Positions 15,823 to 61,260 of a stretch of 64,000 nucleotides of DNA are shown here, in pieces. Source of the stretch: Paraspadella gotoi (taxonomy: Eukaryota; Animalia; Chaetognatha); assembly GCA_051294375.1 (NCBI GenBank), contig CM119263.1:28433280-28497279 (forward strand). Reading direction: 5' to 3'. Both the position numbers and the translations under genes were made by a program. The notes beneath the pieces are model-generated. The model was not told the DNA's origin, did not search any database, and worked only from the letters and a program-made list of their open reading frames with translations. Each line of letters opens with the position of its first letter. Position 1 is the stretch's first letter.

Positions 15823-15898
<76 letters not shown>

Positions 15899-18836: not shown

Positions 18837-18872
<36 letters not shown>

Positions 18873-18884
18873 TCTGTCTCTCTT

Positions 18885-18916
<32 letters not shown>

Positions 18917-23776: not shown

Positions 23777-24210
23777 TTTAGATAATTTCTTTTTTTTTTC
23801 CTGATTGTAATATTTCATTGGAGTACCGTAGCGGTTTATTGTACGGAACAAAAGAATGCTAACTAAATAAGATTATAAATCTACTTTGAAATTTCTTAAA
23901 AATTCTAACATTACAACAAATATATTGGAAAATAAAAATAAAACAATTCAGCGTAGCAGTTTTTTCCTTATAAATATAATGATTCTCAGATAATTAGAAG
24001 CATAAATTTTTTACAGGATATATTTATGGAACGTAGTCGTCGGTGATACATGTCAAGAACTTAATTTTAACAGTTAGGTCCTTAATTGAAACTGAGCAAT
24101 TAACATTTAACTGAACAAGTAACGCTGTTTTTTTTAGGTGTCCCTAAACCCGAAAAACAGGTCAAAGTTGATAAAAATTCACGGTGCCACTTCCTGCTGA
24201 AACACATCTT

Positions 24211-24420
24211 GCGGTGGCACATCTTGCAGTTCCACATCTCACGGTGGCACATCTTGCAGTGCCACATCCCACGGTGGCACATCTTGCAGTGCCACATCTC
24301 ACGGTGGCACATCTTGCAGTGCCACACATCACGGTGGCACATCTTGCAGTGCCACATCTCACGGTGGCACATCTTGCAGTGCCACATTTCACGGTGGCAC
24401 ATCTTGCAGTGCCACATCTC
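24211..24420. repeat. 30-bp palindromic minisatellite, 7 copies
   Basis: Unit ACGGTGGCACATCTTGCAGTGCCACATCTC. GTGGCAC and its reverse complement GTGCCAC alternate every 15 bp. No unique spacers. Confidence 0.95.
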
Positions 24421-25241
24421 ATCGCGGTCGCAAATTCTTCGCGGTGCCCGAAGCAACAGCGAAGATAAACACCGGAGAAAAATTTCTATGCAAATTTCCC
24501 GCGGGAAGAAAAAAAGTAGTTCAGCCCCGACGCACGAATTGGCTAATATCTTTTGTTGTTGCTGTTGTTGTTGTTGTTAAAATATTTAGAGTCGTGAAAA
24601 AAAACAAGGGAGGCAAAGTACCAGGCTACACGAGACGCGCTCGTGCTTTCGTCTTTACAATTCTTCCCCCCCAAAAAAATCTTCAAAAACTATGAACAAA
24701 AACTAATGAGCTTAAAATGATTTTTTTCCCTTTTTTCAAAATTGATAATTTTTTTTTTTTTTTCTGAAACAAAAGTAAATAAAAAATATAAAAATAATTT
24801 TTCTGAAATAAAAGAGACAATTTGACAATTAAGACAATAAGAAGATTAAACGATTTGAAAAATTGATAAATATTTTCTGCGCGAATTTTATTTCGCATTT
24901 TTTCTCGTCATCGCCTTTTGTGATCAGATCGACGACGACGACGACGACAATGACGACGACGACGACATAACAATTCCACCCAATTTCCCTTTTTTTTTCC
25001 TCCGTCGAGACAGCGACTTGTGGCGACGCCCCGTGGAGTTTCTATAGACGCCGCTACCGGTGCTCCCTTTCTGCTACGAGGCGTACTGTGCCGGGGGACT
25101 TCCCCCCGGCTTTTCCCCCACTTAAACCGCCTGCCCTCCGCTCCCCCTTCTTTCTCCCCTGCGGGGGTCGACGTTTCGTCGTCGACAAAACTCGTTTAAA
25201 TGTGTAATGGAAATTCGGTTCCACCCAGACCGTTAAACAAC

Positions 25242-30152: not shown

Positions 30153-30832
30153 AACTTTCTTTTTTCTTTAACAACATGACCCCTAATTCATTATTTTCTT
30201 TCTAAGGTCTACACTTTTTTCGTCCCTTTTCTCTCCCACTCTCTCTCCCTGTTTCTCACTCGCTCTATCTTCCCACGCCTTTTGTCTCTCTTTCTCCTCT
30301 CCCACCCCCCTCTCTCTCTTTCTCACTCCCCCTTTCTCCACCGTCACGCAACAAGACGAAAAACATGTCAATATTTGGTCAACACAAACAAAGGGGCAAA
30401 AACCGCCGCGGCGAGTCGCGCCGACAAAAGACGCCATAGATATTCTGGGCCGAAGACAAAAAAAAAGGAAAGGCTTCTTTTTCTCGTCCGAGTTTCTTAA
30501 TTGCGTTTTCCCTCTGGCCTTTTGTTTTCCCGCCGTTTCTATTTCTGTCAGGCGAGTTCCTCATTCGGGTGTGTGCGTACCTCTCTCTCTCTCTCTCTCC
30601 TCTCTTCTCTCTCTCTCTCTCTCTCTTCTCTCTCCTCTCTCTCTCTCTTCTCTCTCTTCTTTCTCTTTCTCCTTTCTTCTCTCTTCTCCTTCTCTTTCTC
30701 TTTTCTCACATTCGTTTCACGGTCATGTGTAGTTTTTCTACTCTTCGCCATTTCTTTTCCGCGGTCTTGATTACTTTTTGTCTCTATCTCATCTTCTCTC
30801 TCTCTCTCTCTCCTCTCTCTCTTCTCTTCTCT

Positions 30833-30920
<88 letters not shown>

Positions 30921-34822: not shown

Positions 34823-34853
<31 letters not shown>

Positions 34854-35990
34854 CGAGAGGGAGTTGAGAGAGAGAAGAGACGACTGATGAGAAGAGAGAT
34901 GCGTATGGAGTGAGAGAGAGATGATGAGAGAAGAGAGAGAGAGAGAGAGAGATTGAGAGAGAAGTTGAGAGAGAGAGAGAGAAGAGATTGACGAGAGGAG
35001 AGAGAGAGGAGAAGCTAGAGAGAGAGCAGAGACGAGATCAGAGAGAGACGATACGAGAAGTCGAGAAGAGAGCGCGACTGAGAATGAGATAGACGACGAG
35101 GGAGAGGAGGGAGAGGAGGAGAGATGAGATGTCGGACGGGAGCCAGCATGGGAGTGAATTCGGAAGTCTGCACAAGAGTTGCTTGAGAGGAGAGAGCGCA
35201 GACCGAGTACGAGGGAGCGAGGACCCCGCGGAACGAAGCAGAGAGATCGACCCGAGAGCAGTGAGAGAGAGACGTAGAGAGAGTAGAGAGGAGAGAGAGA
35301 GCAGAGAGAGAGAGAGAGAGGAAACCTGTAAAAAATACTTTCGAACACGAACTGAAACGATAATAAAATAGAAAAGAATTCATCCCGATGTGGAATATTA
35401 TCGTAGTAAGAAATATATAAACACAAAAAAGTTAAACAAGTTTACTAAGTTTGANNNNNNNNNNNNNNNNNNNNNNNNNGTGTTGACATTGAATGGAGAC
35501 AAAGAAGGAGCGGACAAAATAGGAAGAATGAAATCGAATCGGCTTAGGTTACTATGTGATATTAATTTTTAAAGGAGACAAAGAAAGAAAAACAATTGCT
35601 TTACATTTGTAAACATAAGACCATACTTACTTATACATCAAATTTAAAATAAGCTAAAACTTTCTTCGACCAGCGTTTGAGGGAGCGAAATTATTCATGG
35701 AAGAACTATGAATTTATTTAAAATAGACTATAAAAAAGATTGGCTATTTGATTTTCTATTTTACATAATAAACCACACGCAGGATTGTTTCAGGGTGACC
35801 TGGATATGCTTGGAGTAATTTAGGATAAAAAATTAACAAATCTAATCATTTTTTTAAAGATCACAAACTGACTTTGCTTAAAATATTTTTTAAAATTAAT
35901 TTTATAAAAACCCAAAGTGAAAGTCGTAAAGCGAAATGGCACCAAAAGTGAAACTGATAATACACCCAAAAGTTGAACCGGGAATTAAAC

Positions 35991-39456: not shown

Positions 39457-41120
39457 GATACGTCGCTTCTGTTGCGTCGGACGTCGGACGAGTGAAAGTG
39501 AAAAATGACGGGAGTGAAGAGGGAGGAGTGAAAAAAAAGGAAAAAATAGGAAAAGGAAAAAGGAAAGTTGAAAAAAAAGTGCGGGGAACAGAGTGAGAAA
39601 AATATAGGAGCTAAAAGACGAATAAAATAATGATAAACGCAACATGATAAAAAAGAACAAAAAATATAAAAAAGTAGAAAATACAACGAAGAATCAATAA
39701 AAATATTATTTCTGTTCAGTTTCTACTTTTTTATTTCAATCGAAGTTATCAAATTTATTCTTTTCTTCGATGCAGCCATCGCAGATTCAGTTTTTATCTT
39801 GGGTTTTCCTTCATCTCCCTTTTACCCTCTCCTTCTCCTCCCTCACCTCTCCCCCTTCTTCTTCCTCCCTCACATCCCCCCCTCCATCCTCTTTTCCAGA
39901 CGATACGAGTCAGCATTTAAATTCTTCTCCCGTCGCCGCAGAAACTACATCCACAGAATCGCGAGACATCGTCTCGTTCNNNNNNNNNNNNNNNNNNNNN
40001 NNNNNNNNNNNNNNNNNNNNNNNNNNNNNNNNNNNNNNNNNNNNNNNNNNNNNNNNNNNNNNNNNNNNNNNNNNNNNNNNNNNNNNNNNNNNNNNNNNNN
40101 NNNNNNNNNNNNNNNNNNNNNNNNNNNNNNNNNNNNNNNNNNNNNNNNNNNNNNNNNNNNNNNNNNNNNNNNNNNNNNNNNNNNNNNNNNNNNNNNNNNN
40201 NNNNNNNNNNNNNNNNNNNNNNNNNNNNNNNNNNNNNNNNNNNNNNNNNNNNNNNNNNNNNNNNNNNNNNNNNNNNNNNNNNNNNNNNNNNNNNNNNNNN
40301 NNNNNNNNNNNNNNNNNNNNNNNNNNNNNNNNNNNNNNNNNNNNNNNNNNNNNNNNNNNNNNNNNNNNNNNNNNNNNNNNNNNNNNNNNNNNNNNNNNNN
40401 NNNNNNNNNNNNNNNNNNNNNNNNNNNNNNNNNNNNNNNNNNNNNNNNNNNNNNNNNNNNNNNNNNNNNNNNNNNNNNNNNNNNNNNNNNNNNNNNNNNN
40501 NNNNNNNNNNNNNNNNNNNNNNNNNNNNNNNNNNNNNNNNNNNNNNNNNNNNNNNNNNNNNNNNNNNNNNNNNNNNNNNNNNNNNNNNNNNNNNNNNNNN
40601 NNNNNNNNNNNNNNNNNNNNNNNNNNNNNNNNNNNNNNNNNNNNNNNNNNNNNNNNNNNNNNNNNNNNNNNNNNNNNNNNNNNNTCTCTCTCTCTCTCGC
40701 CTCCTTTAATTGACGCTCCCGTCGGACAGAAACCGCGAACGAGAAAAATTACGCTCGAACCAATTCACGCGATGAGAATCACGTGACAGCTTTCATTTGT
40801 TTCGTTCACCTCAGTTCGTCAGTTCGTCAGTTCGTCAGTTCTGTTTTGTATTATTAGTTTTATACTTAACACAAATATATATGTATTTTTATCATTTTAT
40901 TTGTTAATAGTTCCCATTTTTTTGTTCTCAGAGATTCGAATAATATTGATTTTTTATTTTTTTAAATTTTTTTTATAATTAAATTGGTACTGCACGATAA
41001 AAATCATCCATTAAATAAATAAGCTAACTTGCCCCCGTCTTATCACTGTATCCCCTTATTGATTCTCTAAACGGCCTTCAATGCGCACATCCTCGCATGA
41101 GCCAAGACGTTTCCATTTAC

Positions 41121-42426: not shown

Positions 42427-45400
42427 TTATTTTCCTTTTCCCTTCGACTCCCAAACTTTTCTCGTCATCTCGCTCCATTTCTCTCGTCCCAAAAACTCCT
42501 TCACTCTCAACTCGTCCTTCATGTCTCTTCGAATCTGCGCAAAGTCCGCCTCTAACAGCAACTTCTTCAAATGCCGCAAGTCGTCGAAGATTCGCACGTG
42601 CGGCATTTCGTACCAATCGGAGAACTGCATCCAATACATCTCGGCCTCGGCGTCTTCGTCCATGTCGACGTTCGGACTGTACGGGTGAGAGCTGAGTCCG
42701 TCCTCCACTCTTGGTCGCGTGGCCGTCTCCAGTCCGGGCGTGTTGACGCAATAAGGGACGCTGACCATCGTCCGGTCGTGACCCAGGCCGACCGTCATCT
42801 TCCCCGTCAAAGGCTCAACGAACGAATGATTCAAAAGAAATTTGGGTGAGGGCATAAAGAGGGGCACGCCCACGGCATACAGTTCCGTGATACGCAAGGA
42901 AAATACAGAATACGGTATATACACCGCGGCTCGATACTTCGCCAATTCTTCGATATTAAACTCGCGAGTGTCGTGAGAGTTTTTCACGTAGCGAGTCTTT
43001 ATCTCCGGGTTTAAATAAGATTCAACGTTTTTAGAAAATTCACTTTTATAAAATTTAAAAGTGAAAATCAAAAGGGAATCGTGAGTTTCGCGTGATTCGA
43101 TGTGATTCAAATGATAAGCGCCGAAAGTGGGAACCAATAAAGGATCGATCCCCGTGTAATACTTCATGTATTCCAAATCGTATCGATTAGTGACCCCGAC
43201 TGAGCTGCGTTTTTCACGGGACCAAATCCTTAATTGTCCATTGAACGAATTCCACATTTCAACTGTGCACTGAGCCAAGTTGTATCGATGAGCCGACACT
43301 ATGATGACTGGTCGATCGAACGGAACCCAAAGTTGACAAACGGAAGGAGGAAAGGAGCAAACGAAGGCGTCGATCTTTTTCACTCTTTCGTCGTCTTTGT
43401 AGAAATTGTAATTTTCCTCAACCCAACGCGGTTCTTGCAGAATCGTGTCCTTGACGTAGACTTGGAAAACTGGGGACAATTCGGTGATGAAGGAAACTCC
43501 CGGCCAATCGTTCACTTGAGGATAATTTTTCAATCTTCCGTGAAATCCCATGATCGTGACGTTGATGCCGAATGTGGACAGCGTCGCCGTCACGTGAGTT
43601 CGACTTCCCTGATGCATGTCCACCGTCGCGAAACTCAAATCGCGAGGAAAGTGAATCGATTTCGATAATTTGGTTTCCAAGGCAACGGACGCGATTTTCT
43701 TGAGCGTTTCACCGCTAGAAACGATTCTCTCTTTTAAATCCGAAGAGAATCCGAGGCAGGAAAACACTTCGTAACCAGGGAATCGATATCCGACTGAAAG
43801 AAGAGATTCAATCCAAAGTTGAACGAGAAAAACGTCGTCGATTTCCACGAATCCGCGTTCGTAAAGATCGATCCAAAGAGACTCCAGTTTGTCGAGAAAA
43901 TCTCTATCGTCGTCGACGTCATTCCTAATGAAATTGATCAATTCAGTCGTTGAATAAGCTATATTGTGCCCATGACTGTGGGCAGTATAAAGCTTGAAAT
44001 CTTGAAAGCGTGAAAGCTTGCAGGGACCTGCTATGTCATTATCTTGTAAGAGTGATGGAGGCCTAAAACCACCAAAGCCTGTTCAAAGTCAGGGGCAAGA
44101 TAGCTTATTTATTAAAGAATGGCTAATTTTTATTATTGGTTGTACAAATTTCATAGCATAGGCGTAACAGGACCCTGCAAGCATTTAATCACACTCAAAC
44201 TCTCACAATCTCACACTCTCACCTTGCTTTCCTAACGTAATTCCTAACGACGTGATCGACTAAAACCCCGCTTGTGTCGGTAAAGCTGAGTTTCGGCCTC
44301 AAAGTCGGCCAAGTACGAGTGAGGGTTTCGGTCTTGCACCACGAGAGGGCGTGGCAAGAAACGAGGGACAGTCCGACGTCGGGGAACAGCGCCTGCGCGG
44401 CGTAGGATCGCCAGATGTCAGAGACGCGGCCGTGGACCGTGGACGGAAGGAAGAGGGCCCAGAAGGCGTCGTAGAAATGAAAGAGTGGCTTGAGCGTTGT
44501 ATGGGGAGATGAGACGAGGAGGGACTCTGACCACCGGCTGGGTGAAGGTGTAATTGGAGTCTGTGATGTAAATAAATAAATATATTATCACTGGCTCCAT
44601 TTTTATAAATATTAATTTTAAATCTATTTTAAACAATATTTTGACTTGAGAAGATAAGACGATGATATGTCATTGCCTGCCATTAAAATGACACAAAAAT
44701 TACACATAACAAACATATATCCAATTCAAAACAAACCTTGATATGGAGGAGCTTTCGCTTTCGATGGCGATCAAAAAACGGAGTTTTTTTGGTCAATGCT
44801 ATAAATGGCATCAAAGTCTGGCTGAATATCTGCAAGAGATTGCAATACGCCAAATTTGACGGATTCTTGGTTCACTGGTTTTAATGGGCGGTTCAAGTCG
44901 AATTTTTCGAATGAGATCGAGAGGAAAACCTCGTGGCCAAGTTGGAAAGTGTGGACCACCTAAAATTGGGTAAGGGTTGAAGGCGACGGTTTGGTTATCG
45001 TGGTCGGGTTCCACGATTCCGTAACCTGGGAAAGAAGAAATATTCCTTATTTTATTTATAGTTCATAAGCGTAAAAAATAAATAAGTCTTTTTTGTTAAA
45101 GCGCTGGGATTTTCTCGCTAAAGGTCGATTATTCGATAATTTTAAGTCATTGTTTTTTTTTTGGTTATGAAAATTAGTATTTCTCTAATATGAAATTTGT
45201 GAACAAATCGTTTACTAAGATGGCATTTAACGATTCCCTTCGAGTTTAAACTCTTGAACGCCTAAAAATCAAAAGTTATCTAATTGACTTACTTCCAGGA
45301 TCCTTAAGGTAAGTCCCAATACTGAGCGTAGGGTCGGGCGTCGCCCCGTCCATCCAAAACTTCAACGAGTTGTCATCGTCGAAATCCCAAATGAATTTGG

Positions 45401-46645
45401 CTCCACGAGCGACGGCGAACAAGAACCCGACGTTTTTGCGTCCAAAGTTTTTCCAGGGAAGAAAATCGATGAGATTGCCGCCAATTTGAGATTGGGTTGA
45501 GTCGGAGAGAAAGATTATGTTGTCTCCCAGGGTCGAGTCGAAGTAGTAGTCCTTTTAAAATATTAAGTATCTAAATGAAATAAGTAAACGGATAAAAAAA
45601 TTGAAAAAAATAAAATTTACGAACCTAATTAGAATTTAAACAACCGTCAGAAAAAAAAAAAACGAAAAGAGAACAAAAAGATACTGACCGACGAGACAAA
45701 AACAGACACATTGACTATTGAAGGACAGATAGAAAGACAGAAAGAAAGATAGGACAAAATTACATTCAGAATGTTAAAATTACGAAATGACAAAAACTTC
45801 TGGTTCTATATTATTCGATAAAGTTATACCAACAAATCGCGAGAGATAATTTTACAAAGAAAAGAGCAACGCTCACTTGTGGCGCTCCTTTGTCGCCGAC
45901 GACGACGACGCACCAATCGGTGGCGTAAAGAAATCTTCTCACTGCTTCGCTAGGTGGCGAGAATATCGTAGTCACCACCGCCCATTTCGAACCGCAGGAG
46001 TCAAATCTATTGTAAAAGAATCTGAATTTGGAATATATAAAGTTAAAAAAAATATATATGAATATAAGGGAATAGAATGAAATACATACAATAAATACAA
46101 CATACGAATATATTAATATGAAATGAATGAATAAATTTAAATCAAATGATTAACAGAATAACTCATTACAGAAAATAGAAATTGTCAATTGATTAAATAC
46201 TGATGACGGTCCATGGATAGACATTAAACCAATCGAAAGAATGAATATTATACATAAATACTAAAATAAATAATAATATAAATAATACATAAATAGACTA
46301 TAAAGAGCCTAAAATAAACTGATTAGACAAGAAATGTAACATACCATGAACATTTTTTTTCTCAACTCACCTTCCAGTTTTGACCCCTCTATCTTCATCG
46401 CAGTTTCTTTGCCGAGAATATCCGGTCCAGTATCGTCGTCTATTTGCCGGGAATTCCCGAATTTTGTTACCGGTAAAAAGATTTCCGGTCGTTGCCGAGC
46501 CAACGGCTTTTGCGATCAAGTCGTCGGCTGTTTAATATTACGAAATTATTTGGCACTGACTCTCTCTCTATTTTCTCTTCATTGACATACCTGGTCTAAC
46601 CACCTCTCTTGACGACCCTTCCCACCAAAATTGGCGCCAGGTCAT
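42427..46645 (-). CDS. Two-domain putative glycosyltransferase: STELLO/DUF288-like domain plus C-terminal GT-B-like domain (~900 aa); several 1-bp indels in exons 5-6
   Basis: Exons 46645-46591 (uncertain), 46527-46371, 46006-45877, 45551-45293, 45025-44737, 44560-44223, 43924-42427. STELLO-like motifs: KWAVVTT, WCVVVVGDKGAP, LPWKNFGRKNVGFLFAVARGAKFIWDFDDDN, FNPYP...TWPRGFPL, GVLQSLADIQPDFDAIY, PYNAQATL, FWALFLPSTVHGRVSDIWRSY, QDRNPHSYLADFEAE, LYERGFVEIDDV...W...LLSVGYRFP. Then ~440 aa with DMHQG, AFVCSFPP, NRYDLEY, YRAAVYIPYS, ELYAVGVPLFMPS, FSDWY..PH. Confidence 0.8.
44048..44125 (-). repeat. Interspersed repeat fragment (second family) in the last intron of the glycosyltransferase gene
   Basis: Reverse-complement match to 23438-23512. 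Confidence 0.75.
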
Positions 46646-47193
46646 AAATAACGAGACCAAAATTAAAAGACTAAAAATTAATTTTAAATTTCTCATTTTT
46701 TTTTTCGTCGAAGTTTAAACTGAATATGAAAAGTGGGACATTTAAAAAAAGTTATCTCGTTTCAGGAAAAAGACACAATAACTAATTGATGGTCATTTGA
46801 GGTGAGATGTGACCTTAAAAGCGAAAAGCTTTCGAGTATTGACGGCGAAAAATTGGGTCAATCGTATGAAATTATTAACTGAATAAAATCTATTTGGCGG
46901 AGTGGTTGAATACAGACTGTGAATTGGTAAAAGCGAAACAGAAACACAGGCTCTATAACGTCAATGTATTGATACAAATGAGATGGTTGTCAAAAAAATT
47001 TAATTAAAAGTAATTAAAAAATTAATTTAGGAATTTCGACTGACAATCTAACTTATAGACGAGAAAGTTTTTGAGAGAGAATCCGTTAAAAGGAAATGAC
47101 TGATTTGAAAAAAAAAAAAACAATTTCTTTATTTTTTAAATACTATATAGAATTAATAAATAATTCTGTCTGTCTCTTTCTTTTTTTATAATG

Positions 47194-47409
47194 GAATCAA
47201 AAAAGTCCCTGCAGAGTCAATTTTAGAATAGTAAGTTTGCGAAACACCTCAGTCGATTGCGCCTGCGCCACTGATGGCATTTACGACGCCAATGTAACGG
47301 CATCGACCCAATTTTATTACAATTCTGCAAAGGTCGACTCCTACGTTTACAAAAGAATTTCACGGATTCGTGAACAGCGATACGAGGCGATCTCGGTGAA
47401 TTTTCTGTG
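47194..47409 (+). CDS. Candidate exon of an unassigned secreted or extracellular protein
   Basis: Open frame NQKSPCRVNFRIVSLRNTSVDCACATDGIYDANVTASTQFYYNSAKVDSYVYKRISRIREQRYEAISVNFL* after a pyrimidine tract; Cys residues and N-x-S/T sites. Confidence 0.3.
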
Positions 47410-48799
47410 AGAGTAAAAAACGGACGTTTGGTTGTTCTGGTTGTGAATAATATTAACTCAACGTCTGCTTCTGTCTTTCGTCAGTGAATTCGAACGGTGA
47501 TCAGTGAACCTCGTTCACCCTCTACGACTGTCAACCCGTGAATATCGATTGCTCACCGAATGAGACCAACAAATACTAAAACGAGTTTCACGACTTCGCT
47601 TCGGGCTTCGTCGTCGTCGTCGTCGTCGTAGCAAATTCTTGTTTTTCTTTTACGAGCTAGTTGTCGTTGTCGTTGTTATCTTTCTCCCGGTCGTTCTATT
47701 TATACTAATAGGGTTAAGTTTCTCATTTGTCATTGTTATCCTCATCTTGTTGAATGTCTAGTGAATTTTTGTTGTCGTCGTTATATCTTCTTTTCTCGTT
47801 TTGTCGTTGTTGTAGTAGTAAACGTCGTCGTTGTTGTTGTCGTCGTAGTCGTTGGCAAAGCTTCGTCGAAACTCCATCGTGTTTTGACAAGATAATTAGG
47901 AAGGAACGAGTTAAGGGGCAGATGGAAAATGGAGCACGGAAAGAAAATGGAGACAGAAAAGAAGATAGAAATATTGAAAAATAGAAAGAAAGAAAGAAAG
48001 AATAAAAGAAAGAAAGAAAGAAAGAAAGAAATAAAGAAATAAAGAAAGAAAGAAAGAAAGAAAAAAGATAAAAGTATTAAAGAAGGAGTAGGGTAAAAAG
48101 AAAAAAAAGAAAGAAAGAAAGAAAAAAAGGAAAGATAGAAATACTAAACAAGGAGTAGGGTAAAAAGAAAGAAAGAAAGAAAAAAGAAAGAAAGAAAGAA
48201 AGAGAGAAAGAAAGAAAGAAAGAAAGAAAGAAAAAAAGAAAGAAAGTCAAAACAAGAAGTAGTCCAAAAACCCTCATCCGCGAGATTCGGTGTTGAATTA
48301 TTAACTAAGAAAAAAAAGTTATAAATTTTCTCCGCCGGAAATGGAATTTGCCGGAAAAGATGAACGGGCCGGAAAAAAATAGAGAAGGAAAAAGATAAGG
48401 AGAGAGAGGAAAAAGAGGGGAAAGGGATGAGGATGAAAAAAAAGGAAAAGATGAAAAGGATAAGAGAAAAAAAGGACGAGAGAAATCAGAAGATAAATGA
48501 GCAAATGATGAGGAGCGAAAAAAAACAAGGAAGCCGAAAAAAAATGACGGGAAAAAAAAAAAAAAAAAAAACAACAGGGAAAAAAACACATGATTTTTTT
48601 TGTTTCGTTTTTTGTTTTTCGGTTTTAGTTGCGAAGCGATTATTCGCGGGGCGACTCCATGTAAATAATTTTTTGGTCAGTTTGTTGGACTGTTCGTTTA
48701 TCCTATTTGCGTTTTACATCATCATAACTTTGGTAATACTGTGGATATTGGATAAGGCGCTAAGTTGGCTGAAGATGACTATCTGTAACTTCCATAACC

Positions 48800-48915
48800 C
48801 CTTCTAGCAGCCATAGAACGGTTCCTGGGCTTGGAACCAGGCTTGAGGGTTTGCCACACCCCCAAGGCGGCTTACGGCCGTCCTCACGCTTCCCGCAGGG
48901 TTGGTACCGGGTTCA
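48800..48915 (-). mobile_element. SINE-like body fragment (copied again at ~57045-57160)
   Basis: Similar to 207-265; see that feature. Confidence 0.55.
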
Positions 48916-49127
48916 AGAAAGGCATTTGTATTTGTATTCTTGTGACCGTAGATTAATACGATCAGGTGTTAAAAAAAATCAATACGCCTTAGTTTAGTTA
49001 ATAAATAGTTCTTAAATAAATGCAAATAAGTAATAATCCATAAGATGCTTAATGTGCACGTTTACTACCTACGTAGTCACGTGATCATCTTCAAACGTTA
49101 GCAATTTCCCGGTTCTTGTTTCCCCTT

Positions 49128-49290
49128 TTTTTTGGTCAGTTCCTTTTTCCTTTCTATTTTTCCCCTTTTTTTGGTCAGTTCCTTTTTCCTTTCTATTTTT
49201 TCCCCTTTTTTTGGTCAGTTCTTTTTCCTTTCTATTTTTTCCCTTTTTTTTTGGTCAGTTCCTTTTCCTTTCTATTTTTTCCCTTTTTTT
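49128..49290. repeat. ~38-bp pyrimidine-rich minisatellite, 4-5 copies
   Basis: Unit TTTTTGGTCAGTTCCTTTTTCCTTTCTATTTTTTCCCC; duplicated at ~57380-57550. Confidence 0.85.
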
Positions 49291-50706
49291 TGGTCAGTTT
49301 CCTTTCTACCTTTCTCATTTCCTCCTTTTCTCTTTTTTTCTTTTCAACCCCAAACAATCCACCTCGAATCTCCCTTTTCGCAAATTCGTTTTTCTCCCTC
49401 GGGCGACGCCGTCGTTCAACGCGTGAGAAAAGGAATGAGACGACGACGATAAAACGGAACCGAAAACAACAACAACAACAACAACGAAGACGACGACGAC
49501 AGGGAGGAAAACAACTACAACAACTAACGCAACACTAACAAAGACAACATCTCCGAAAAATTAAAAGAACAGTATCATTACAACCACAACACAACACCAA
49601 ATCAGCAAAATCCACAACATAAATACGGACGACGAAAACAACAACGACGACAACAACAACAACGACCACAACATATCGACAAAAAACACAAGGCTAAAAA
49701 AAAAGCTCAATATCGTTTCCCTTCTTCTCCCCAGGAGGATAACAACGCACGTGGTTCCCTCTGTCGAAATGTCTCAATTTTTCGACCCCTAGCATCGAGC
49801 GGGCAATCAAGAGCTCAATCCCGTTGCCCCGCCGATCCACTGCCCTAACCACCCCACCGCCCACTACCCCTCCGTCCCGCCCTTTCATTTTCCCTTCCTT
49901 TGACCTCCCCTTCGCCCCATGTGGTCGCTAAACGCTGGACCCCGTCCTCCTTTGCCTCATATTCTCCTCAATGGACGAGGTTGCGTCTTTTTCTTCAATC
50001 TTCTAACGGTCCGGTTCGGCGTCCCGTTCGCCAATAACCCGGGGCTCGGCGGATATATAAGCCCGTCCGCGGGGCCGCTTATAGTGCGAGCTATGTCGCT
50101 AGGTTGGCTCTGTCACGTGAACTGCTCACGCGCCGTGCTACGGTCACGCCACGGTCTCGCCACGGACGGAGGAAGGCGCCGCATCACGACCCCGTATCGG
50201 ACTTTTTTGCTCTGAGCTCCTGACAAAGGACNNNNNNNNNNNNNNNNNNNNNNNNNNNNNNNNNNNNNNNNNNNNNNNNNNNNNNNNNNNNNNNNNNNNN
50301 NNNNNNNNNNNNNNNNNNNNNNNNNNNNNNNNNNNNNNNNNNNNNNNNNNNNNNNNNNNNNNNNNNNNNNNNNNNNNNNNNNNNNNNNNNNNNNNNNNNN
50401 NNNNNNNNNNNNNNNNNNNNNNNNNNNNNNNNNNNNNNNNNNNNNNGGAAGAAGAAAGAAAGGGGACTGGGTATAAAGAGAAGGAGTCAATACAAGAGGA
50501 GAGAAGAATCTTGAGAAGGCGCCAAAGGAGACAGGAATGGATGGTATGATAACGTAGCGGAAAAATGGGAAGAGAGAAGAAAGACTTATGAGAGGAAGGA
50601 ATTAGGATGGGAGAAAGAGAGAGAAAATATGAGGAGAAAATAAATAAGAAAAGAGAATGGGAAGAGGGAGAAGTTGAGAGGTATTTAAAGTCTGAAAAAT
50701 TAAAAA

Positions 50707-51120: not shown

Positions 51121-51420
51121 CTGCAACTCCGATCATGGCAACCTAGGATAATACCATTGTGACAATACGACCTAGAGATTCCACACCGATGAGGGTCATC
51201 AGCTGTCTGACTCTGAGCGGGCTAAAAACTCGTCTCTATCGTGCATCGATCTCTGGTTATTCCTGCTCTGGCTTAAATGAGAAGTGACCCGTTTAAATAT
51301 TCCAGTTGGTGAGAAACCTCGCACCCTGGTTATCACAAGGAAATCCACCGTTTTCTTAACATTCAACTTTTCTAATCTTCGAACTCTGGATAGGGACATT
51401 ATGACATTATGACATTATAA
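51121..51420 (+). mobile_element. Possible 3' fragment of a LINE
   Basis: Average-GC, non-repetitive segment ending in a short (ATGACATT)n-like tail; no diagnostic motif recognised. Confidence 0.2.
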
Positions 51421-53009
51421 CTAAGTAGTTCTACTAATTCGAACGGTCCTCGACCAACAGTGACAACAACAACGACAGCTGCCGTTCTTCAAAGCGGAAG
51501 CGGCGATCGAATCGCGAAGGGCGTGTCCCTTGGATTCGCGGGTCGCCGACTATGCAGATGAAGGGGAGTTGATACTCCGTGACATCTGTGATGGCGGCAG
51601 CAGCGTCAGCAGGAGCGGAGGCGGCGGCGACCGCGGCGGAAGAAGCGTCAAAGGGCGATGAGGCCTCGAGCGGCCGCTCATTGCAAAGTCACGCCCTTGA
51701 CTCGCGTCTCGCGCGTTAACATCAATCGATGCAACATCGGACACAATCTAATCTCTATCAATCTTTCTCTCTGCTCTCTATCTTCTTCTCTCTTCTCTTC
51801 TCGTCCTTCTCTCTCTCTCATCTCGTCTCTCTCTCTCGTCTCTCTCGTCTCTCTCTCACTCTTCTCGGCCTTCTCTCTCTCTGCTTCTCACTACCTCCGA
51901 GCCATCTCTCTCATTCTCCTTTCTCTCTCTCCCTCACCCACTTACAGGTTCCCTCGACCGAACGAAACGGCCTTCGCGTTGTCACGCGAATTCGTGTGAC
52001 CCGGTTGCCATAGCGACAGTTTTTCCTCTCTACCGCGCGACGCGGCCGCCGAGAATCGTAAAACTCTCTCTCCCGCGCCCGAATTGGGTGGCGTACGTGC
52101 GACGGGCCCAAGTTGCGCGTGCAGAGTTTATCGCTCTGAACGTGCGAAGTACACGTACGTCCGGGTCGGTACCGGAAAAATGTTAAAATTAACGCTTAGT
52201 TTTGTAAATTTATGTTTGCCCTTTGCTCTTTTTATTATTTTCTCCTATATACAGTTTGTACTAATAATTTACTACTGTATGCAAATTAGATTAATGAATT
52301 CAATATAAATAGTAATATTTACGAATCCATCTAATAAAATAGTAGTACGAGACTGTAGGAAAGTAGGAAATATTGGTTGGGACTGAAAAGATGAGTTCTG
52401 TAATGGCCATAACATTCAATGGGAGGGCGATTAGAAAGTGGGTTAACGGAGCGGAGACTGTCCTTACCTTGTCCTTACAGCGTCGGGATCAGTCGAGCAG
52501 GAGGAGGAAGAGTCGTGGGGAAAAAAGGTAAGTTAATCAGGGAAGTCATGGTCTCTTTGCTTCGGAAAAGGATTACTTAAAATAATTTTTCTTTTTATTA
52601 AATATTTTTCTTAAACATAACAAAAATAGTGATGCAATGATTACTACTTACAGTCAGTAATCCTACCATGAACTGGATAGTTTTTTTCTTTTTAATAATT
52701 TCATACACTAAATTCTTTACTCTATTTTATCGTTCTCGAGATGAGAGTTTCTCCGTCGGCAATAAATTTGTGGGAGCGGTTCCAACCTTTAAGTTTTACT
52801 GCTTCCGATTCAACCTTTCAAGTCCGAAGCCTTTTTTGCTTTCATTCTAAATATTGAAAGGAAAAAAAAGAGGAAAAAAAAGGGAAAAAAGAAAAATGAA
52901 AGTTGAACCCGAGAAACTTTTAACAAAATTGAGAGCTTTAAAAAAAGACCCTTTTTTTTCTTTTCACGATTTACTCGCTTAAATCTCCTTTCCTTCCTCC
53001 CAAAAGAGA

Positions 53010-56000
53010 GAGATGAATTTTTCAAGAATGAGATCGAGAGGAAAGCCTCGGTGGCCAAGTTGGAAAGTGTGGATCACCTAATATTGGGTAAGGGTTGAAG
53101 GCGACGGTTTGGGTTAACTCGTTGTCGGGGTTCCAGCGAATTTCCGTAACCTGGGAACAGAAGAAATATCCTTATTTTAATTTATAGTTCATTAAGCGTA
53201 AAAAATAAATCAAGTCTTTTTGTTAAAGCGCTGGGGAATTTTCTCGCTAAGGCGATTATTCGATCATTTTAAGTCATTGATTTTTTTGGTTATGAAATTA
53301 GTTGTTTCTCTAATATGAAAATTTGTGAACAAATCCGTTTACTAAGATGGCATTTAACGTATTCCTTCGAGTTTAAACTCTTGAACGCCTAAAATTAAGT
53401 GATTATCATAATTGACTCTACTTCCAGGATCCCTTAACGGTAAAGTCCAATACCTGAGCGTAAGGGTCGGGCGTCGCCCCGTCCATCCAAACTTCAAAAA
53501 CGCCGTGTCCTCGTCGAAATCCGCAAATGAATTTTGCTGCACACGACAGATCGGCGACAAGAAAGCCACGTTTTTTGCCGTCCAAAGTTTCAGGGAAGAA
53601 AATGTCGATGAGATGTGCCGGCCAATTTGAGATCTGGGTTGAGTTCGGAGAGAAAGATTATGTTGTCTCCTCTAGGGTCGAGTCGAAGAGAGTCCTTTTA
53701 AAATATTAAGTATATAAATGAAATAAGTAAACGGATAAAAATTTGAAAAATAAAATTTACGGAAACCTAGATAGAATTTAAACTAACCGTCAAGATAAAA
53801 AAAAAACACGAAAAGAGAACAAAAAGATACTGACGCGAGAGACAAAAAACAGACACATTGACTATTGAAGGACAGATAGAAAGACAGAAAGAAGATAGGA
53901 CAACAATACATTCAGATGTTTAAAATTAACGAAAATGACAAAACTTCTGGTTCTATAATTATTCGATAAAGTTTATAGCAAACAATCGCGAGAGATAATT
54001 TTAACAAAGATAATGAAGCACGCTTCACTTGTGGCGCTCCCTTTGTCGCCGACGACGACGACGCACCAATCGGTGGCGTAAAGAAATCTTCCTCACTGAT
54101 TCTTCGCTAGATGGCGAGAATATCGTAGTCCACCATCCGCGCCAGTTTCGAACCGCAAGAGTCAAATCTATTGTAAAAGAATCTGAATTGGGAATATATA
54201 GTTAAAATACAATATATATGAATATAAGGGAATAAAATGAAATGCATAACAATAAATACAACATATGAAATATATTAAGATGTGAAATGAATGAATAAAT
54301 TTAAATGCCAAAATGATAACAGAATAACTCATTAAGCAGTAAAATAGAAATTGTCAACTGTGATTAAAATACTGATGAGGTCCATGATAGACATTAACCA
54401 ATCGAAGAAATGATATTATAACATAAATGATAAAATAAATAATATATAAATAATACATAAATAGACTATAAAGAGACTAAAATAAACTGGCAACAGACAA
54501 GAAAATGTAACATACCATGAACATTTTTTTTCTCAACTCACTTCCAGTTTTGACCCCCTCATCTTCAATCGCAGTTTCTTTGCCGAGAATATCCGGTCCA
54601 GTATCGTCCGTCTATTTCCGGATATCCCGAATTTTGTTAACCGGTAAAAAGATTTCCGGTCGTTGCCGAGCCAACGGCTTTTGCGATCAGTCCCCGTCGG
54701 CTGTTTAATATTCAAATTATTTGCATGCTCTCTCTCTATTTTCCTCTTCATTGGACATACTGTCTAACCACCTCTCTTGACCACCCTTCACCATAATTGC
54801 GCAGGTCATGAAATAACGAGACCAAAATAAAGACTAAAAATTAATTTTAATTTCCTCCATTTTCTTTTTCGTCGAAGTTTAAACTGATATGAAAAGTGGG
54901 ACATTTAAAAAAAAGTTATTCTCGTTTCAGGAAACAGACAAAATAACTAATTGATGTTCATTGAGTGAGATGTGACTTAAAAGCGAAAAGCTTCGAGTTA
55001 TGACGGAGAAAAATTGGGTCAATGTATGAAATGATTAACTGAATAAAATCTATTGGCGAGTGGTTGAATACAGACTGTGAATTTGTAAAAAGCGAAACCG
55101 AAACAACAGCTCTATAACCGTCAATGTATTGATACACATGAGATTGGCTTGTCAAAAAAATTTAAATTAAAACGTAAATTAAAATTAAATTAGGAATTTT
55201 CGACTGACAATCTAACTTATAGACGAGAAAGTTTTTGAGAGAGAATCCGTTAAAAAGGAAATGACTGTTGATTTGAAAAAAAAATATAATTTTCTTTATT
55301 TTTTATAATATACTATATAGAATTAATAATAATTCTGTCTGTCTCTTTCTTTTTTTTATATAGGAATCAAAAAAGTCCCTGCAGAGTCCATTTTAGAATA
55401 GTAAGTTTGCGAAACACCTCAGTCGATTGCGCCTGCGCCATGATGGCATTAACGACGCAATGTAACGGCATCGATCCCAATTTTTATTAGCAATTCTCAA
55501 AGGTCGACTTCCTTACGTTTACAAAAGAATTTCACACGGATTCGTGCACAGCGATACGAGGCGAACTCGGTGGAATTTCTGTGAGAGTAAAAAACGGACG
55601 TTTGGTTGTTCTGGTTGTGAATAAATATTAACTAAACGTCTGCTTCTGTCTTTGCGTCAGTAGAATCGAACGGTGATCAGTGAACCTCGTTCACCCTCTA
55701 CGACGTCAACCCGTGAATATCGATTTGCTCACCAGAATGAGAACCACAAATACTAAAACGATTTCACGACTTTCGGCTCGGGCTTCGCATCGTCGTCGTC
55801 GTCGTCGATCGTCGTCGTCGTAAGTTTCTTGTTTTTCTTTTAACGAGCTAGTTGTCGTTGTCTGTTGTTATCTTTCTCCCGGTCGTTCTATTTATACTAA
55901 TAGGGTTAAGTTCCCTCATTTGTCATTGTTATCTTCATCTTGTTTGAATGTCTAGTGAATTTTGTTGTCGTCGTTATATCTTCTTTTCTCGTTTTGTCGT

Positions 56001-58510
56001 TGTTGTAGTAGTAAAACGTCGTCGTTGTTGGTGTCGTCGTACGTCGTTGGCAAAGCTTCGTCGAACTCGCAATCGTGGTTTGCAAGATAATTAGGAAGGA
56101 ACGAGTTAAGGGGCAGATGGAAAATGGAGCAACGGAAAGAAAATGGAGACAGAAAAAAAGATAGAAATATTGAAAAATAGAAAGAAAGAAGAAAGAAAGA
56201 AGAGAAAGAAGAAAGAAGAAAGAAAGAAGAGAGAAAGTAAGAAGAAGAAAAAGAAAGAAAGAAAGAAAGAAAGAAAAGAAGAAAGAAAGAAGAAAGAAGA
56301 TAAAAATATTAAAGAAGGAGAGGGTAAAGAAAAAAAAGAAGAAAGAAAGAAAAAAAGGAAAGATAGAAATACTAAAGCAAGGAGTAGGGTAAAGAAAGAA
56401 GAAAGAAAAAGAAAGAAGAAAGAAAGAAAGAAAGAAGAAGAAAGAAAGAAAGAAGAAAGAGAAAAGAAGAAAGAAAGAAAGAAAAGAAAAGTCACAACCA
56501 AGAAGTAGTCGCAAAAACCCTCATCCGCGGATTGCCGGTGTTGAATTATTAACTAGGAAAAAGTTAACAATTTTCTCCGCCGGAAATGGAATTCCGGAAA
56601 AGATGAACGGGCCGGAAAAAAAATAGAGAAGGAAAAAGAATAAGGAGAGAGAGGAAAAAGAGGGGAAGGGATGAGATGAAAAAAGGAAAGATGAAAAGAA
56701 TAGAGAAAAAAGACGAAGATTCAGAAGATAAATGAGCAAATGAATGAAGGAGCGAAAAAAAAACAAGGAAGCCGAAAAAATGACGGAAAAAATATAAAAA
56801 AAAAACAACAGGGAAAAAACACATGATTTTTTTTGTTTGTTTTTTTGTTTTTTCGGTTTTAGTTGCGAAGCGATTATTCGACGGGGCGACTCCATGGTAA
56901 ATAATTTTTTTTGGGTCAGTTTGTTGACTGTTCGTTTACCTATTTGCGTTATACATCATCATACTTTGTAATACTGTGGATATTGAATTAAGGCGCTAAG
57001 TTGCTAAGATGACTATCTGTTAACTTTCATAACCCCTTCTAGCAGCCATAGAACGGTTCCTGTGCTTGGAACCAGGCCCTTGAGGGTTTGCCACACCCCC
57101 AGGCGGCTTACGGCCCGTCCTCAAACGCTTTGCCCGCAGGTTGGTAACCGGGTTTTCAAGAAAGGCTTTTTGTATTTTGTTATTCTTTTGACCGTAGATT
57201 AATACATCAAGTGTTAAAAAAGAAAACAGATACGCCTTAGTTTTAGTTAATAAATAGTTCTTGAAATAAATGCAAATAAGTATAATCATAAGATGCTAAT
57301 GTGCACGTTTACTAACACTACGTAGTCACGTGATCAATCTTCAAACGTTAAGCAATTTCCCGGTTCTTGTTTCCCCTTTTTTGGTCAGTTCCTTTTTCCT
57401 TTCTATTTTTCCCCTTTTTTTTGGTCAGTCTCCTTTTTCCTTTCTATTTTTTCCCCTTTTTTTGGTCATTCTTTTTCCTTTCTATTTTTTCCCCTTTTTT
57501 TTTGGTCAGTTCCTTTTTCCTTTTCTATTTTTTCTCCTTTTTTTTGGTCAGTTTCCTTTCTCCTTTCTCATTTCCTCCTTTTCCTTTTTTTCTTTTCAAC
57601 CCCAAACAATCCACCTCGAATCTCCCTTTTCGCCAAATTCGTTTTGTCTCCCTCGGGCGACGCGTCGTTCAAACGCGTGGAAAAGGAATGAAGACGAACG
57701 ACGATAAAACGGAACGAAAAAAACAACAACAAACAACCAACAACGACGAAGACGACGACGACAGGGAGGAAAACAACTACAACAACGAACGCAAACACCT
57801 TAACAAAGACAACATCTCCAGACAAATTAAAAGAAAGTATCATTACAACCACACACAACACCAAATCAGCAAAATCCACAACAAAAATACGGACGACGCA
57901 AAACAACGACGACAACACACAAACCGACGGACAAATATCGACAAAAAACACAGGCTAAAAAAAAAGCTCAAATATGTTTCCCTTCTTCCTCCAGGAGTAA
58001 CAACGCACGTGGGTTCCCTCTGTCCCGAATGTCTCAAATTTTTCGACCCTTGCATCGAGCGGGCAACAAGAGCTTCAATCCGCGTTGCCGCTGCCAGCTG
58101 CCCTAACCACCCCAGCTGCCCCGCCGCCCACTTCCCTCCGTCAACGCCTTTTCATTTTCCCTCCTTTGACGTCCGCCTTCGCCCATGTGGTCGCTAAACG
58201 CTGGACCCCGTCCTCCTTTGCCTCAATATTCTCCTCAACTGGACGAGGTTGCGTCTTTTTCTTATCTTTAACGGTCCCCGGTTCGCGTCCCGTTCGCCAA
58301 AATAACGCGGGCTCGGCGGATATATAAGCCCGTCCGCGGGCGCTTATAGTGCGAGCTATGGTCGCTAGGATGGTGTTGTCACGGGAACTGCTCACGCGCC
58401 GTGCCGACGGCACGCCACGGTCTCGCCACGGACGCGAGGAAGGCGCCGCATCATCGCCCGTATCCGGACTTTTTTTTCCTTTTTTGCTCTGAAGCTCCTG
58501 AACAAGATCT
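53010..58510. repeat. Noisy direct duplicate of ~44900-50231, including the 5' exons of the STELLO-like gene with many frameshifts
   Basis: Collinear match (e.g. 45321-45350 versus 53451-53485; 46401-46500 versus 54571-54670; 50205-50230 versus 58480-58505). Differences are mostly 1-bp indels; the copy ends ~160 bp before the 25-N gap at 58672. Confidence 0.9.
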
Positions 58511-58584: not shown

Positions 58585-59699
58585 TGAGAGAGGAGAGAGA
58601 GAGAGAAAAGCCAGCGATCCAACAGTAATGGCGTGGTATAAATAGAGGAAGCGAGACGAAGAGAGGAGAAANNNNNNNNNNNNNNNNNNNNNNNNNGCGG
58701 AGTGGAAGGGGCAAGGGGATGAGGGGACCTGAAGCGTCGTTGGCTTGACAACGGAGTTCGTTTGCTTTAATGAATAAGTAAAAAATAATAATATCTGTTA
58801 TTTATCGTTATTTAGGCAATTTAATTTAAAAAATTATCAACATCATTTTACAATGTTTTCGCTAATTGTATAACAACCTGTATAACAAAATTACAATGTC
58901 GATTAAAGAAACTGTAATATTAACTTTCGCAAAATCGGCGACGATTATGAGGACGACGAAGATGATTTCGATGACAACGTATACGACGACGACAATGACG
59001 ACGACGAAAACGATGATGGTGACGAAGACGACGACGACGAAAACATCGACGACGACAACGATGACGACGACAACGACGNNNNNNNNNNNNNNNNNNNNNN
59101 NNNNNNNNNNNNNNNNNNNNNNNNNNNNNNNNNNNNNNNNNNNNNNNNNNNNNNNNNNNNNNNNNNNNNNNNNNNNNNNNNNNNNNNNNNNNNNNNNNNN
59201 NNNNNNNNNNNNNNNNNNNNNNNNNNNNNNNNNNNNNNNNNNNNNNNNNNNNNNNNNNNNNNNNNNCAACGACAACGATGACGACGACAACGACGACGAC
59301 GAGACGATGGTGACGAAGACGACGACAGCGACGACGGAAAATTGGAGGAGAATTGAAAAGGAGGAAAAGAAGTGGAAACCGATGGAGGAAATTGGCGGAG
59401 GATATGTTAACCATTACGATGACGACGATGACGACGACGACGATGACGACCATTACTATGACGACGACCATTACGAGATACGCATCGATGAACTTGTGGT
59501 GGGGAGGCGGGCGTGAGGAGGGAAGTAAATAACGGAGGGACGTCATTCTACTAACATACATGTAGTATTATTAGATATGTTTCTCTAGCAAAATTGAAAT
59601 TTTAATAAACCATTATGTAGTATTTCAAATACGTCTCCTTGTAGCATTTAGTTTTGTAAAAAAAAAAACCTCAAAATTCTATACATTTTTAAATTCAAT

Positions 59700-61260
59700 T
59701 TAAATTGGAGTAAACAATCGCTCTCAACCCCGACGTGCAGAAATCTAATTCTTTCCAAGACCCTGTGTGAACAACAACAACAACAACAACAACAACCGAA
59801 TTCCTTTTCACTTTCAACCAAAAAGCGGAAAATTGAAAAAATCTTCTCCTTCACGATTTCGAAAGGAGAACGCCGCGTTGATCCGGCGTCGCGCGGCGTC
59901 GTCAACGCCCACTTCCGGTTCGCGTCTCGATCGAGTCGGTAACCATGGGAACGAGACGATTAGAGACGTTGATGTTTTGTGAATCAATCAATGGAGCGAA
60001 TCATCACTCAAACAGATTATGAGTCAATCGATGAAACTTCATCAATTATTCAATCAATACAACAATTAGAAAATTAATCAATCAATCAATCAACTAATTA
60101 AACTTTTTATCAATCAAACACTATCAATGATTTTATTAAACTATACAACAGGAAGTGAGATATATTCCCCCTGGACATTTATTAAGGGGTAAAAAGCTGC
60201 TGACGACGGAAATTTGCTGCGGCGCGGCGTCTGTGGGTAAGATGCTGCTTCCCTGCGGCTGCGGTTCGTAAGTGATTCTTCCGCTGCCAAATTCTTGGAA
60301 TCGACTTTCGTCAGCGAATCTACAAAAATCCCCGGACGGGAATTTGTATCGAGAGAGAGAGNNNNNNNNNNNNNNNNNNNNNNNNNAGTATTTCAAATTC
60401 GTCTCCTATGTGCATTTAGTTTATATATTTTTCCTTTGTTGTAAAAACAAAACCCTCCGAAATTCTAGACATTTTTAAATTTCAATTTTAAGACTTGTGG
60501 AGGTAAAACAATCGCGTGTCTCTAACCGACGTGCTAGGGATAATGTTAATTCTATTACCGTCTTATAGGTTGCACTAACTACAAACAACAACATTCATAA
60601 ACAACAAACAACAACAATCTCAACACAACCCCGAATTCCTCCTTTCACTTGTCACCCAAAAAGCGAAATGTGAACAAAAAATCTTCTCCTTCGCGATTTC
60701 GACAGTGGAACGCGCGCTTGATCCGGCCGTCCGCGCGGCATCGTCAACGCCACTTCCGGTTCGACAATAGACGTCTCGATTTCGATGCCCTGGTAACCAC
60801 TTGGTGATACGAGTTCTCGATTAGAGACTTATAGATGGTTTTGTGAATCAATCAATGAGCGAACATCACTCAAACAATTATGAGTCATCGATGAAACTTC
60901 AATAATTAATCAATCAATACAATATTAGAATTATCAAATCATCAATCAGACTAAATTCAATATTTTATCAATCAAAACACTATCATATGAATTTTTATTA
61001 AACTATACAACAGGTGTGTCAGATATATTTCCCCTCTGGAATTTCTCTTAAGGTGCGGTAAAAGCTGCTGACGATTTCGGAAATTTAGCTGCTTAATGTA
61101 CATTGCGCGGCGTCTGTGTCCGTAAGAGCGCTTTCCCTGCGGGCTGCGGTTCAACGTAAGTCGATTCTTCCCCGCTGAACCACATTTCTTGGAATCGACT
61201 TTCGTCATCGGTAGTCTACAAAAATCCCCGACGGGAATTTGCTATCGAGAGAGAGACGAA
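59700..61260. repeat. Tandem duplication across a 25-N gap (59700-60361 clean; 60387-~61260 noisy and longer)
   Basis: E.g. AAAAAATCTTCTCCTTC.CGATTTCGA at ~59837 and ~60677; CTATACAACAGG at 60141 and ~61002. Confidence 0.9.

Follow-up and report, generated by a model that had tools for sequence, protein, structure and literature searches.

What does the 504-codon open reading frame (ORF) at 42427–43941, on the minus strand of a 64,000-nucleotide stretch of the chaetognath Paraspadella gotoi, encode? The stretch, hereafter the window, covers positions 28,433,280–28,497,279 of contig CM119263.1 (GenBank assembly GCA_051294375.1). We find that the ORF forms the final exon of a gene with seven exons. 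The product joins a STELLO (DUF288, PF03385) domain, a clear homolog of the GT75 mutase MtdL, to a C-terminal domain of ∼400 residues that cannot be placed in any named family and is predicted to adopt the fold of a GT-B glycosyltransferase (GT). The locus is a member of a real, widespread and undescribed two-domain family.

STELLO proteins are required for assembly of the cellulose synthase complex in plants, and we know of no enzymatic activity for them. Plant STELLO1 and STELLO2 have been characterized genetically and were described as distinct from the distant relatives noted in nematodes, fungi and molluscs (PMC4906169). Mollusc genome papers contain only automatic 'STELLO-like' names, and our search of the literature on STELLO, DUF288, PF03385 and fusions of GT75 with GT-B domains returned no paper on the two-domain architecture or on the C-terminal domain.

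Gene structure

An earlier reading of the window, made from the sequence alone, had taken the 504-residue ORF for the end of a larger spliced gene. The gene model bears this out: seven exons extend from 46696 to 42427 on the minus strand, with GT..AG at every junction and phases that are consistent with one another. The parts of the gene are as follows.

42427–43941, minus strand: last-exon ORF of 504 codons, from the ORF list; no other ORF in the window comes close in length
46696–46591, minus strand: exon 1, with the start ATG at 46696, the anchor helix and a phase 1 donor, from the ORF list and splice sites
46527–46371, minus strand: exon 2, stem region with the conserved SATTGNLFTGNKIREFP; acceptor phase 1, donor phase 2
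46006–45877, minus strand: exon 3, first beta-alpha-beta unit of the GT-A Rossmann part (KWAVVTTIFSPPSEAVRRF...VVVVGD)
45551–45293, minus strand: exon 4, GRKNVGFLFA and the DxD motif WDFDDDN (45389–45369)
45025–44737, minus strand: exon 5, WPRGFPL (44939–44919) and the second acidic motif PDFDAIY (44821–44801); two frame breaks
44560 (or 44537)–44223, minus strand: exon 6, with a phase 2 donor; three frame breaks
43924–43777, minus strand: first part of exon 7, where the STELLO/GT75-like domain ends in its C-terminal helices (LESLWIDLYERGF...GYRFP)
43776–42427, minus strand: remainder of exon 7, with a linker, the GT-B-fold domain and the stop codon (42429–42427)

The sequence-only reading had missed exon 2, which lies between the first exon and the exon that contains KWAVVTT. 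This exon was located by tblastn with two homologs (P0054 and P0053), its phases fit those of exons 1 and 3, and it is further supported by residues 51–70 of the structural model, where the predicted local distance difference test score (pLDDT) is about 90. Exon 3 is 47–68% identical by tblastn to P0012, which is an intronless ORF from a protist, and to P0054 and P0062. Exon 6 carries the motifs SPYNAQATL, GRVSDIWRSY (44431–44402) and QDRNPHSY (44336–44313); of its two candidate acceptors, 44537 matches the spacing in the homologs better than 44560.

The junction 44223/43924, which had been predicted to join the last exon in phase 2, is canonical. Intron 6 (44222–43925) has the donor AG/gtgaga and the acceptor cattag/G, giving a phase 2 join AG/G that continues the frame of the final part of exon 6. 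Bridging the five frame breaks gives a conceptual protein of 916 residues. We also considered expression of the last exon by itself and rejected it: the first in-frame ATG (residue 109) would drop the conserved Asp108, and no signal peptide would result. A dispersed repeat of ∼100 nucleotides lies inside intron 6 (44045–44144), with other copies at 23415–23516 and 40997–41041; the copies are 81–84% identical to each other and may represent a small mobile element. An Rfam search at gathering thresholds and a tRNA scan gave no match.

The N-terminus does carry a hydrophobic helix, contrary to the sequence-only reading, in which no membrane anchor was seen. The ATG at 46696 sits 51 nucleotides upstream of the start assumed there (46645, MTWRQFWW) and in the same frame. 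From this ATG the frame begins MRNLKLIFSLLILVSLFMTW, with a Kyte-Doolittle 19-residue mean of 1.64. The signal-anchor helix LKLIFSLLILVSLFMTW is encoded at 46687–46637, and the hydrophobic segment forms a helix at residues 2–26 of the full-length model. Such an anchor would give the protein a type II topology, with its catalytic parts facing the lumen of the endoplasmic reticulum or Golgi.

The STELLO domain is a homolog of the GT75 mutase MtdL

Family membership of the N-terminal half is established through its homologs: the window exons are 42–68% identical to proteins that have a precomputed Pfam match to PF03385, the assignment that had been proposed for this half. In every homolog, the closing part of the STELLO domain aligns with the first ∼55 residues of exon 7, up to GYRFP (43791–43777), and STELLO-only proteins (360–520 residues) stop at the same GYxFP motif. 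The beginning of the last exon thus completes the STELLO domain, as had been suggested.

When the PDB was searched with a profile of the STELLO part, the GT75 mutase MtdL was the only match (E 6.6e-19). A Foldseek comparison of the full-length model with MtdL gave a template-modeling (TM) score of 0.74, a root-mean-square deviation of 4.2 Å and an E-value of 4.9e-13, and the match covers the whole MtdL fold, extending beyond the Rossmann part. We compared individual residues using the frame-corrected translation. In the profile alignment, the family-invariant DDD, WPRG and PDVDAI pair with the DDD, Arg159 and PDVDAI stretch of MtdL, GRVSD pairs with Arg257 and Asp260, and RNxH pairs with His287. 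In MtdL, the DDD (Asp109–111) and His287 are the Mn2+ ligands, Arg159 is self-glycosylated, Asp260 is the proposed base and PDVDAI is conserved (PMC9937993). Equivalents of all the MtdL catalytic residues are present in the window. The acidic DxD-type motif that had been noted in the window, WDFDDDN at 45389–45369, supplies the DDD that aligns with Asp109–111, and both WDFDDDN and PDFDAIY are invariant in the homolog alignment.

The C-terminal domain has a predicted GT-B fold

We modeled the last exon by itself and the full-length conceptual protein with AlphaFold2. The models have pLDDT values of 78.5 and 84.5 and predicted TM scores (pTM) of 0.79 and 0.86, respectively, and both show strand-helix alternation in the lobes of the C-terminal domain. 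In a Foldseek search of the PDB with the last-exon model, all 14 matches at E ≤ 1e-3 are GT-B transferases. With the full-length model, the MtdL entries are followed by GT-B enzymes at ranks 7–24, GlyE (5gvv, rank 16) being a possible exception. The matches to the C-terminal domain include CalG4 (E 5e-6), a kitacinnamycin GT, tetrahydrobiopterin glucosyltransferases, tll1591, MurG, OleD and YjiC, and the best of them are GT1, GT4 and GT28 transferases. Identities are just 8–14% and TM scores 0.4–0.54, and the domain has ∼60 additional C-terminal helical residues relative to solved GT-B enzymes. The suggestion that the final ∼440 residues are GT-B-like is thus supported by the two Rossmann-like lobes of both models and by the Foldseek matches.

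At the level of sequence the domain stands apart. A profile of it gave only chance matches against PDB sequences, an NCBIfam search with it gave no match, and proteins consisting of this domain have no precomputed Pfam match.

Conservation was counted over 244 domain sequences at full coverage. At least 90% conservation is seen at 24 positions, of which the window retains 22. Conserved residues include D108 and H110 after the first strand, R219, Y254, D255, E353, Y355, P360 and P364. D108 and H110 lie in VDMHQG (43623–43600), R219 lies in AHRYNL, and YSPN begins at 42681. The polar set D108, H110, R219, D255 and E353 is at least 92% conserved across the 244 sequences, stand-alone forms included. 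The segment ELYAVGVPLFMPS at 42885–42847 carries E353 (92% conserved), P360 and P364; E353 falls within a modeled helix (349–356) that is followed by a strand (361–364). Judged by its position in the model, this motif (ELYAVGVP) is plausibly the equivalent of the GT-B donor-binding helix.

The two-domain family is widespread

At E ≤ 1e-3, a search with the C-terminal domain profile recovered 2310 cluster representatives, of which 516 also pass E ≤ 1e-30. The representatives include proteins with the full architecture (850–1000 residues; P0053, P0054 and P0056) and stand-alone forms (380–500 residues; P0071, P0091 and P0020). When the conceptual full-length protein was used as the query, more than 100 clusters covered at least 92% of it at 33–39% identity; the closest relative in the collection is no more than 46% identical. 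Two-domain models are present in RefSeq for Mya arenaria (several loci), Saccostrea cucullata, S. echinata and Dreissena polymorpha, all named 'uncharacterized protein', and many other full-length relatives are each encoded by one continuous ORF on a long metagenomic contig. The sequence-only reading had put forward an uncharacterized fusion. That part stands in so far as we found no paper describing it, but the fusion is not peculiar to this locus, since at least 100 full-length clusters share it and it is conserved across hundreds of proteins. The homologs with both domains that were to be sought therefore exist, bivalve RefSeq entries among them. An animal gene is plausible because of these bivalve homologs.

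The C-terminal domain also occurs in other contexts. In P0124 (1058 residues; contigs from NCBI, Logan and ENA) it is fused to an N-terminal region that is unrelated to STELLO and has a DxD-like motif of its own (VNDDT), which suggests that the C-terminal domain is a portable transferase module.

Among bacterial and archaeal reference genomes, three metagenome-assembled genomes (MAGs) from Chlamydiae or an unclassified bacterium match at 68–72%, a Parachlamydiaceae MAG has one weak (24%) match, and no further relatives were found in this reference set. At one locus on a contig of the environmental Chlamydiae type (L005, 1064–3345), a gene for a 357-residue STELLO protein is followed by a gene for the C-terminal domain with overlapping stop and start codons, on a contig that also has ClpX and ClpP. 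At another (L007, 275–2649), the two genes are adjacent and divergent, and a fused chlamydial form of both domains is also found (P0019). Because fusion occurs in many lineages and adjacency in bacteria, there is good evidence, from gene organization, that the two domains are likely to act in one pathway. Chlamydiae are the sole bacterial lineage with relatives in the reference set, and genes may have been exchanged between these symbionts and eukaryotic hosts.

Frame breaks and gene integrity

The upstream STELLO exons had been read as lying in one frame. They do not: tblastn with full-length homologs shows that the homologous frame switches within exons 5 and 6, there are five single-nucleotide breaks, and as assembled the spliced coding sequence meets a stop in exon 5. 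We located four of the breaks with a frameshift-aware dynamic-programming alignment against five homologs, which ends before 44276; the fifth comes from the location of motifs and frames and from piecewise translation.

∼44903 (range 44876–44915), minus strand, exon 5: frame break 1, 1-nucleotide insertion (frameshift-aware alignment)
44797–44800, minus strand, exon 5: frame break 2, 1-nucleotide insertion (frameshift-aware alignment)
44480, minus strand, exon 6: frame break 3, 1-nucleotide insertion (frameshift-aware alignment)
44361–44362, minus strand, exon 6: frame break 4, 1-nucleotide deletion (frameshift-aware alignment)
44276, minus strand, exon 6: frame break 5, 1-nucleotide insertion (motif/frame location and piecewise translation)
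53015–58475, minus strand: near-duplicate of 44900–50208, containing the upstream DNA, exons 1–4 and the first 126 nucleotides of exon 5; listed for context, not as a gene part

With the acceptor at 44537, a sixth frameshift need not be assumed where exons 5 and 6 join. A short intron behind the frame changes can be ruled out: the homologous frames overlap and leave no room for one.

The breaks could be genuine, in which case the window copy would be a pseudogene or decaying paralog from which no full-length protein is made. They are present in the assembly, just three of the five fall in short homopolymer runs, the C-terminal domain is unusually divergent and departs from its relatives at two near-universal positions, and the several paralogs in each bivalve genome make the loss of one copy plausible. 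However, all five breaks lie within ∼650 nucleotides, with none in the 777 nucleotides of exons 1 to 5a and none in the 1498 nucleotides of exon 7. Uniform decay would predict 9–10 indels in exon 7, and the chance of all five falling in the one segment is ∼5e-4. We therefore did not adopt simple pseudogenization of the whole gene as the explanation. The homologous frames of the broken segment contain no in-frame stops, and conservation there is undiminished: once corrected, the segment is 50% identical to nine full-length homologs, the same value as for the unbroken N-terminal segment, and the homologs are 55% identical to one another. The breaks also begin at the junction with the near-duplicate, which ends exactly where the broken stretch starts (44900). 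We regard a genuine pseudogene as unlikely.

The near-duplicate itself is informative. By blastn it is 89% identical to the gene copy over 5.6 kb, with 189 mismatches and 289 gap openings. The differences are mostly single-nucleotide indels, with surplus bases found more often in the duplicate than in the gene copy and with exons and introns affected at equal density. This pattern has the signature of uncorrected single-molecule reads rather than of evolution, and because of these read-error-like indels the scaffold appears to hold unpolished sequence beside the broken stretch. A true segmental duplication is less likely than a noisy redundant contig, as gap openings exceed mismatches 289:189; with unique sequence on its far side (51121–53014), however, the near-duplicate could still be a real partial duplication. 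The most likely interpretation is that the five breaks are assembly or sequencing errors and that the organism itself probably has an intact gene, because the breaks are clustered, conservation is normal once they are corrected, and an indel-riddled duplicate adjoins them. Local damage of this kind in the assembly would lead automatic annotation to miss or truncate the gene.

There are 13 N-runs in the window, five of exactly 25 bases (6196–6220, 11444–11468, 35455–35479, 58672–58696 and 60362–60386) and eight of variable length. The fixed-size gaps suggest a scaffolding or gap-filling step and fit with local problems of sequence quality.

Proposed function and alternatives

The reading that we prefer, with moderate confidence, is that this probably intact gene encodes a two-active-site enzyme of lumenal glycan synthesis in the secretory pathway. 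The N-terminal signal anchor would hold the ∼916-residue protein in a type II orientation with its catalytic parts in the lumen. The STELLO/DUF288 domain, a GT-A-type relative of GT75, would depend on Mn2+ and its DxD motif. Both domains would have their own nucleotide sugar to bind and would work on the same acceptor one after the other. We infer both catalytic competence and cooperation between the domains. Several observations weigh against this account. The coding sequence as assembled is broken and its spliced frame reaches the stop in exon 5, and two of the four chlamydial loci have no STELLO gene in the available sequence. The window differs from the family at residues 323 (Tyr to His) and 336 (His to Tyr), in the region 43001–42973, positions that are at least 94% conserved elsewhere, and its C-terminal domain is 35% identical to its relatives versus 50% among the relatives themselves.

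A different division of labor would have the STELLO domain act as a mutase, making an NDP-furanose (NDP, nucleoside diphosphate) from the NDP-pyranose through an arginine-linked sugar intermediate. The GT-B domain would use this unstable and thermodynamically disfavored donor at once, so that the protein would amount to a single transferase that carries its own donor-making module, rather than to two transferases. The equivalents of the DDD, Arg159 (WPRG), Arg257/Asp260 (GRVSD) and His287 (RNPH) of MtdL (PMC9937993) are invariant in STELLO proteins and present in the window, the MtdL fold is matched in its entirety, and the domain fusion together with the overlapping genes at L005 indicates a tight coupling of the kind that substrate hand-over would favor. 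However, an Arabidopsis STL1 variant in which the corresponding arginine is changed (R271A) still complemented, whereas the DxD mutants did not (PMC4906169), and an arginine-dependent mechanism is therefore disfavored, at least in the plant branch. GT75 enzymes are moreover cytosolic, whereas this protein is lumenal by its predicted topology. On balance we consider the mutase scheme rather unlikely. Related to it is the wider and quite doubtful idea that STELLO-type domains may be lumenal, GT75-like enzymes that prepare or carry sugars, through mutase action between pyranose and furanose or through an arginine-linked intermediate, and feed a dedicated new GT-B family. The role of STELLO might then be read from the fusion as from a 'Rosetta stone', because the fusion recurs and the genes overlap in Chlamydiae.

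Two further possibilities concern the partnership itself, and we judge both improbable. Following the polymerase idea of the sequence-only reading, the protein could be a processive co-polymerase that adds two sugars alternately to give a polymer of repeating disaccharides, as do LARGE, EXT and the capsule polymerases. It has two glycosyltransferase-type domains in one lumenal chain, the pTM of the full-length model suggests a fixed mutual arrangement, and each bivalve genome has several paralogs. Yet the case is one of analogy, with no homology to the known polymerase domain pairs; two single additions would fit the two-domain design equally well, and no candidate polymer is known. The occurrence of the C-terminal domain alone or with unrelated N-terminal modules (P0071, P0091 and P0124) fits a general transferase module instead. 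Alternatively, the C-terminal domain could be a non-catalytic GT-B-like module with a binding, scaffolding or regulatory role, assisting STELLO as pseudo-glycosyltransferases do. Its lack of a sequence link to any characterized GT family and its low Foldseek identities are consistent with such a role, as is the report that STELLO in plants works by interacting with cellulose synthases (PMC4906169). Against this, the high conservation of D108, H110, R219, D255 and E353 is a pattern typical of an active site.

If a hand-over between STELLO and the GT-B domain proves true, the result would establish a new family of glycosyltransferases and provide a first way into STELLO biochemistry. The bacterial gene pairs and intronless protist genes offer an easy experimental entry to the donor and acceptor, and the C-terminal domain would probably deserve a new entry in the domain and CAZy catalogs.

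Other features of the window

A tandem array at 24203–24421 consists of 7.3 copies of a 30-nucleotide unit with 94% matches and is open on both strands (for example, MWHCKMCHRE repeats). Microsatellites of the (AG/CT)n and (AGAA/TTTC)n types are very abundant across the window as a whole, for example at 15793–15961, 18763–18931, 30581–30917, 34828–35048, 47951–48246 and 56147–56489. They account for most of the long 'SLSLSL' and 'FFLSFF' ORFs, none of which is gene-like.

Comparison with known systems

The bivalve RefSeq models, such as Mya arenaria LOC128211070 (XP_052771432) and its equivalents in Saccostrea and Dreissena, share the anchor, the stem motif, the STELLO domain and the GT-B domain in 904–982 residues. 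Identity to the window is 60–68% in the STELLO exons but 37–38% overall and about 30% in the C-terminal domain; these models carry no functional annotation. Arabidopsis STELLO1 and STELLO2 (PF03385) have in common with the window protein the family of the N-terminal domain and, by its predicted topology, the type II anchor design. In STL1, DD205–206 corresponds to WDFDDDN in the window and DVD297–299 to PDFDAIY, and the conserved arginine is shared as well; both acidic motifs are required for STL1 function (Zhang et al. 2016, PMC4906169).

The GT75 NDP-pyranose mutases, or reversibly glycosylated polypeptides (MtdL, PDB 7XPR/7XPU; plant RGP/UAM), are homologous to the STELLO domain over the whole fold, at 20–21% identity. 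GT75 enzymes are soluble, cytosolic and single-domain, whereas the window protein is membrane-anchored and probably lumenal. Because of its signal anchor and the added GT-B domain, the protein is a relative of GT75 and not a member of it.

For the C-terminal half, the comparison is with GT-B transferases of the CAZy families GT1, GT4 and GT28, including CalG4 (3IA7), tetrahydrobiopterin glucosyltransferase (5ZER/9V0L), tll1591 (7FGA) and MurG (1NLM), with which it shares two Rossmann-like lobes. It resembles them further in a conserved Asp-x-His that follows strand 1 of the N-lobe. In the C-lobe, the part that binds the donor in GT-B enzymes, a helix with a conserved Glu leads into a strand (ELYA.G.P.F.PS) and is a putative counterpart of the donor-binding helix. 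The likeness is structural only, as the domain has no sequence-profile match to any solved GT-B enzyme.

LARGE1 (GT8 and GT49), EXT1/2 (GT47 and GT64) and the Pasteurella hyaluronan and chondroitin synthases are two-domain glycan polymerases. None of LARGE, EXT or the class II hyaluronan synthases is recognizable among the Foldseek matches listed. Like the window protein, these polymerases have two GT domains per chain and are type II or membrane-associated, but their domain families are unrelated to those found here: the window protein pairs a GT-A-type, GT75-like domain with a GT-B domain.

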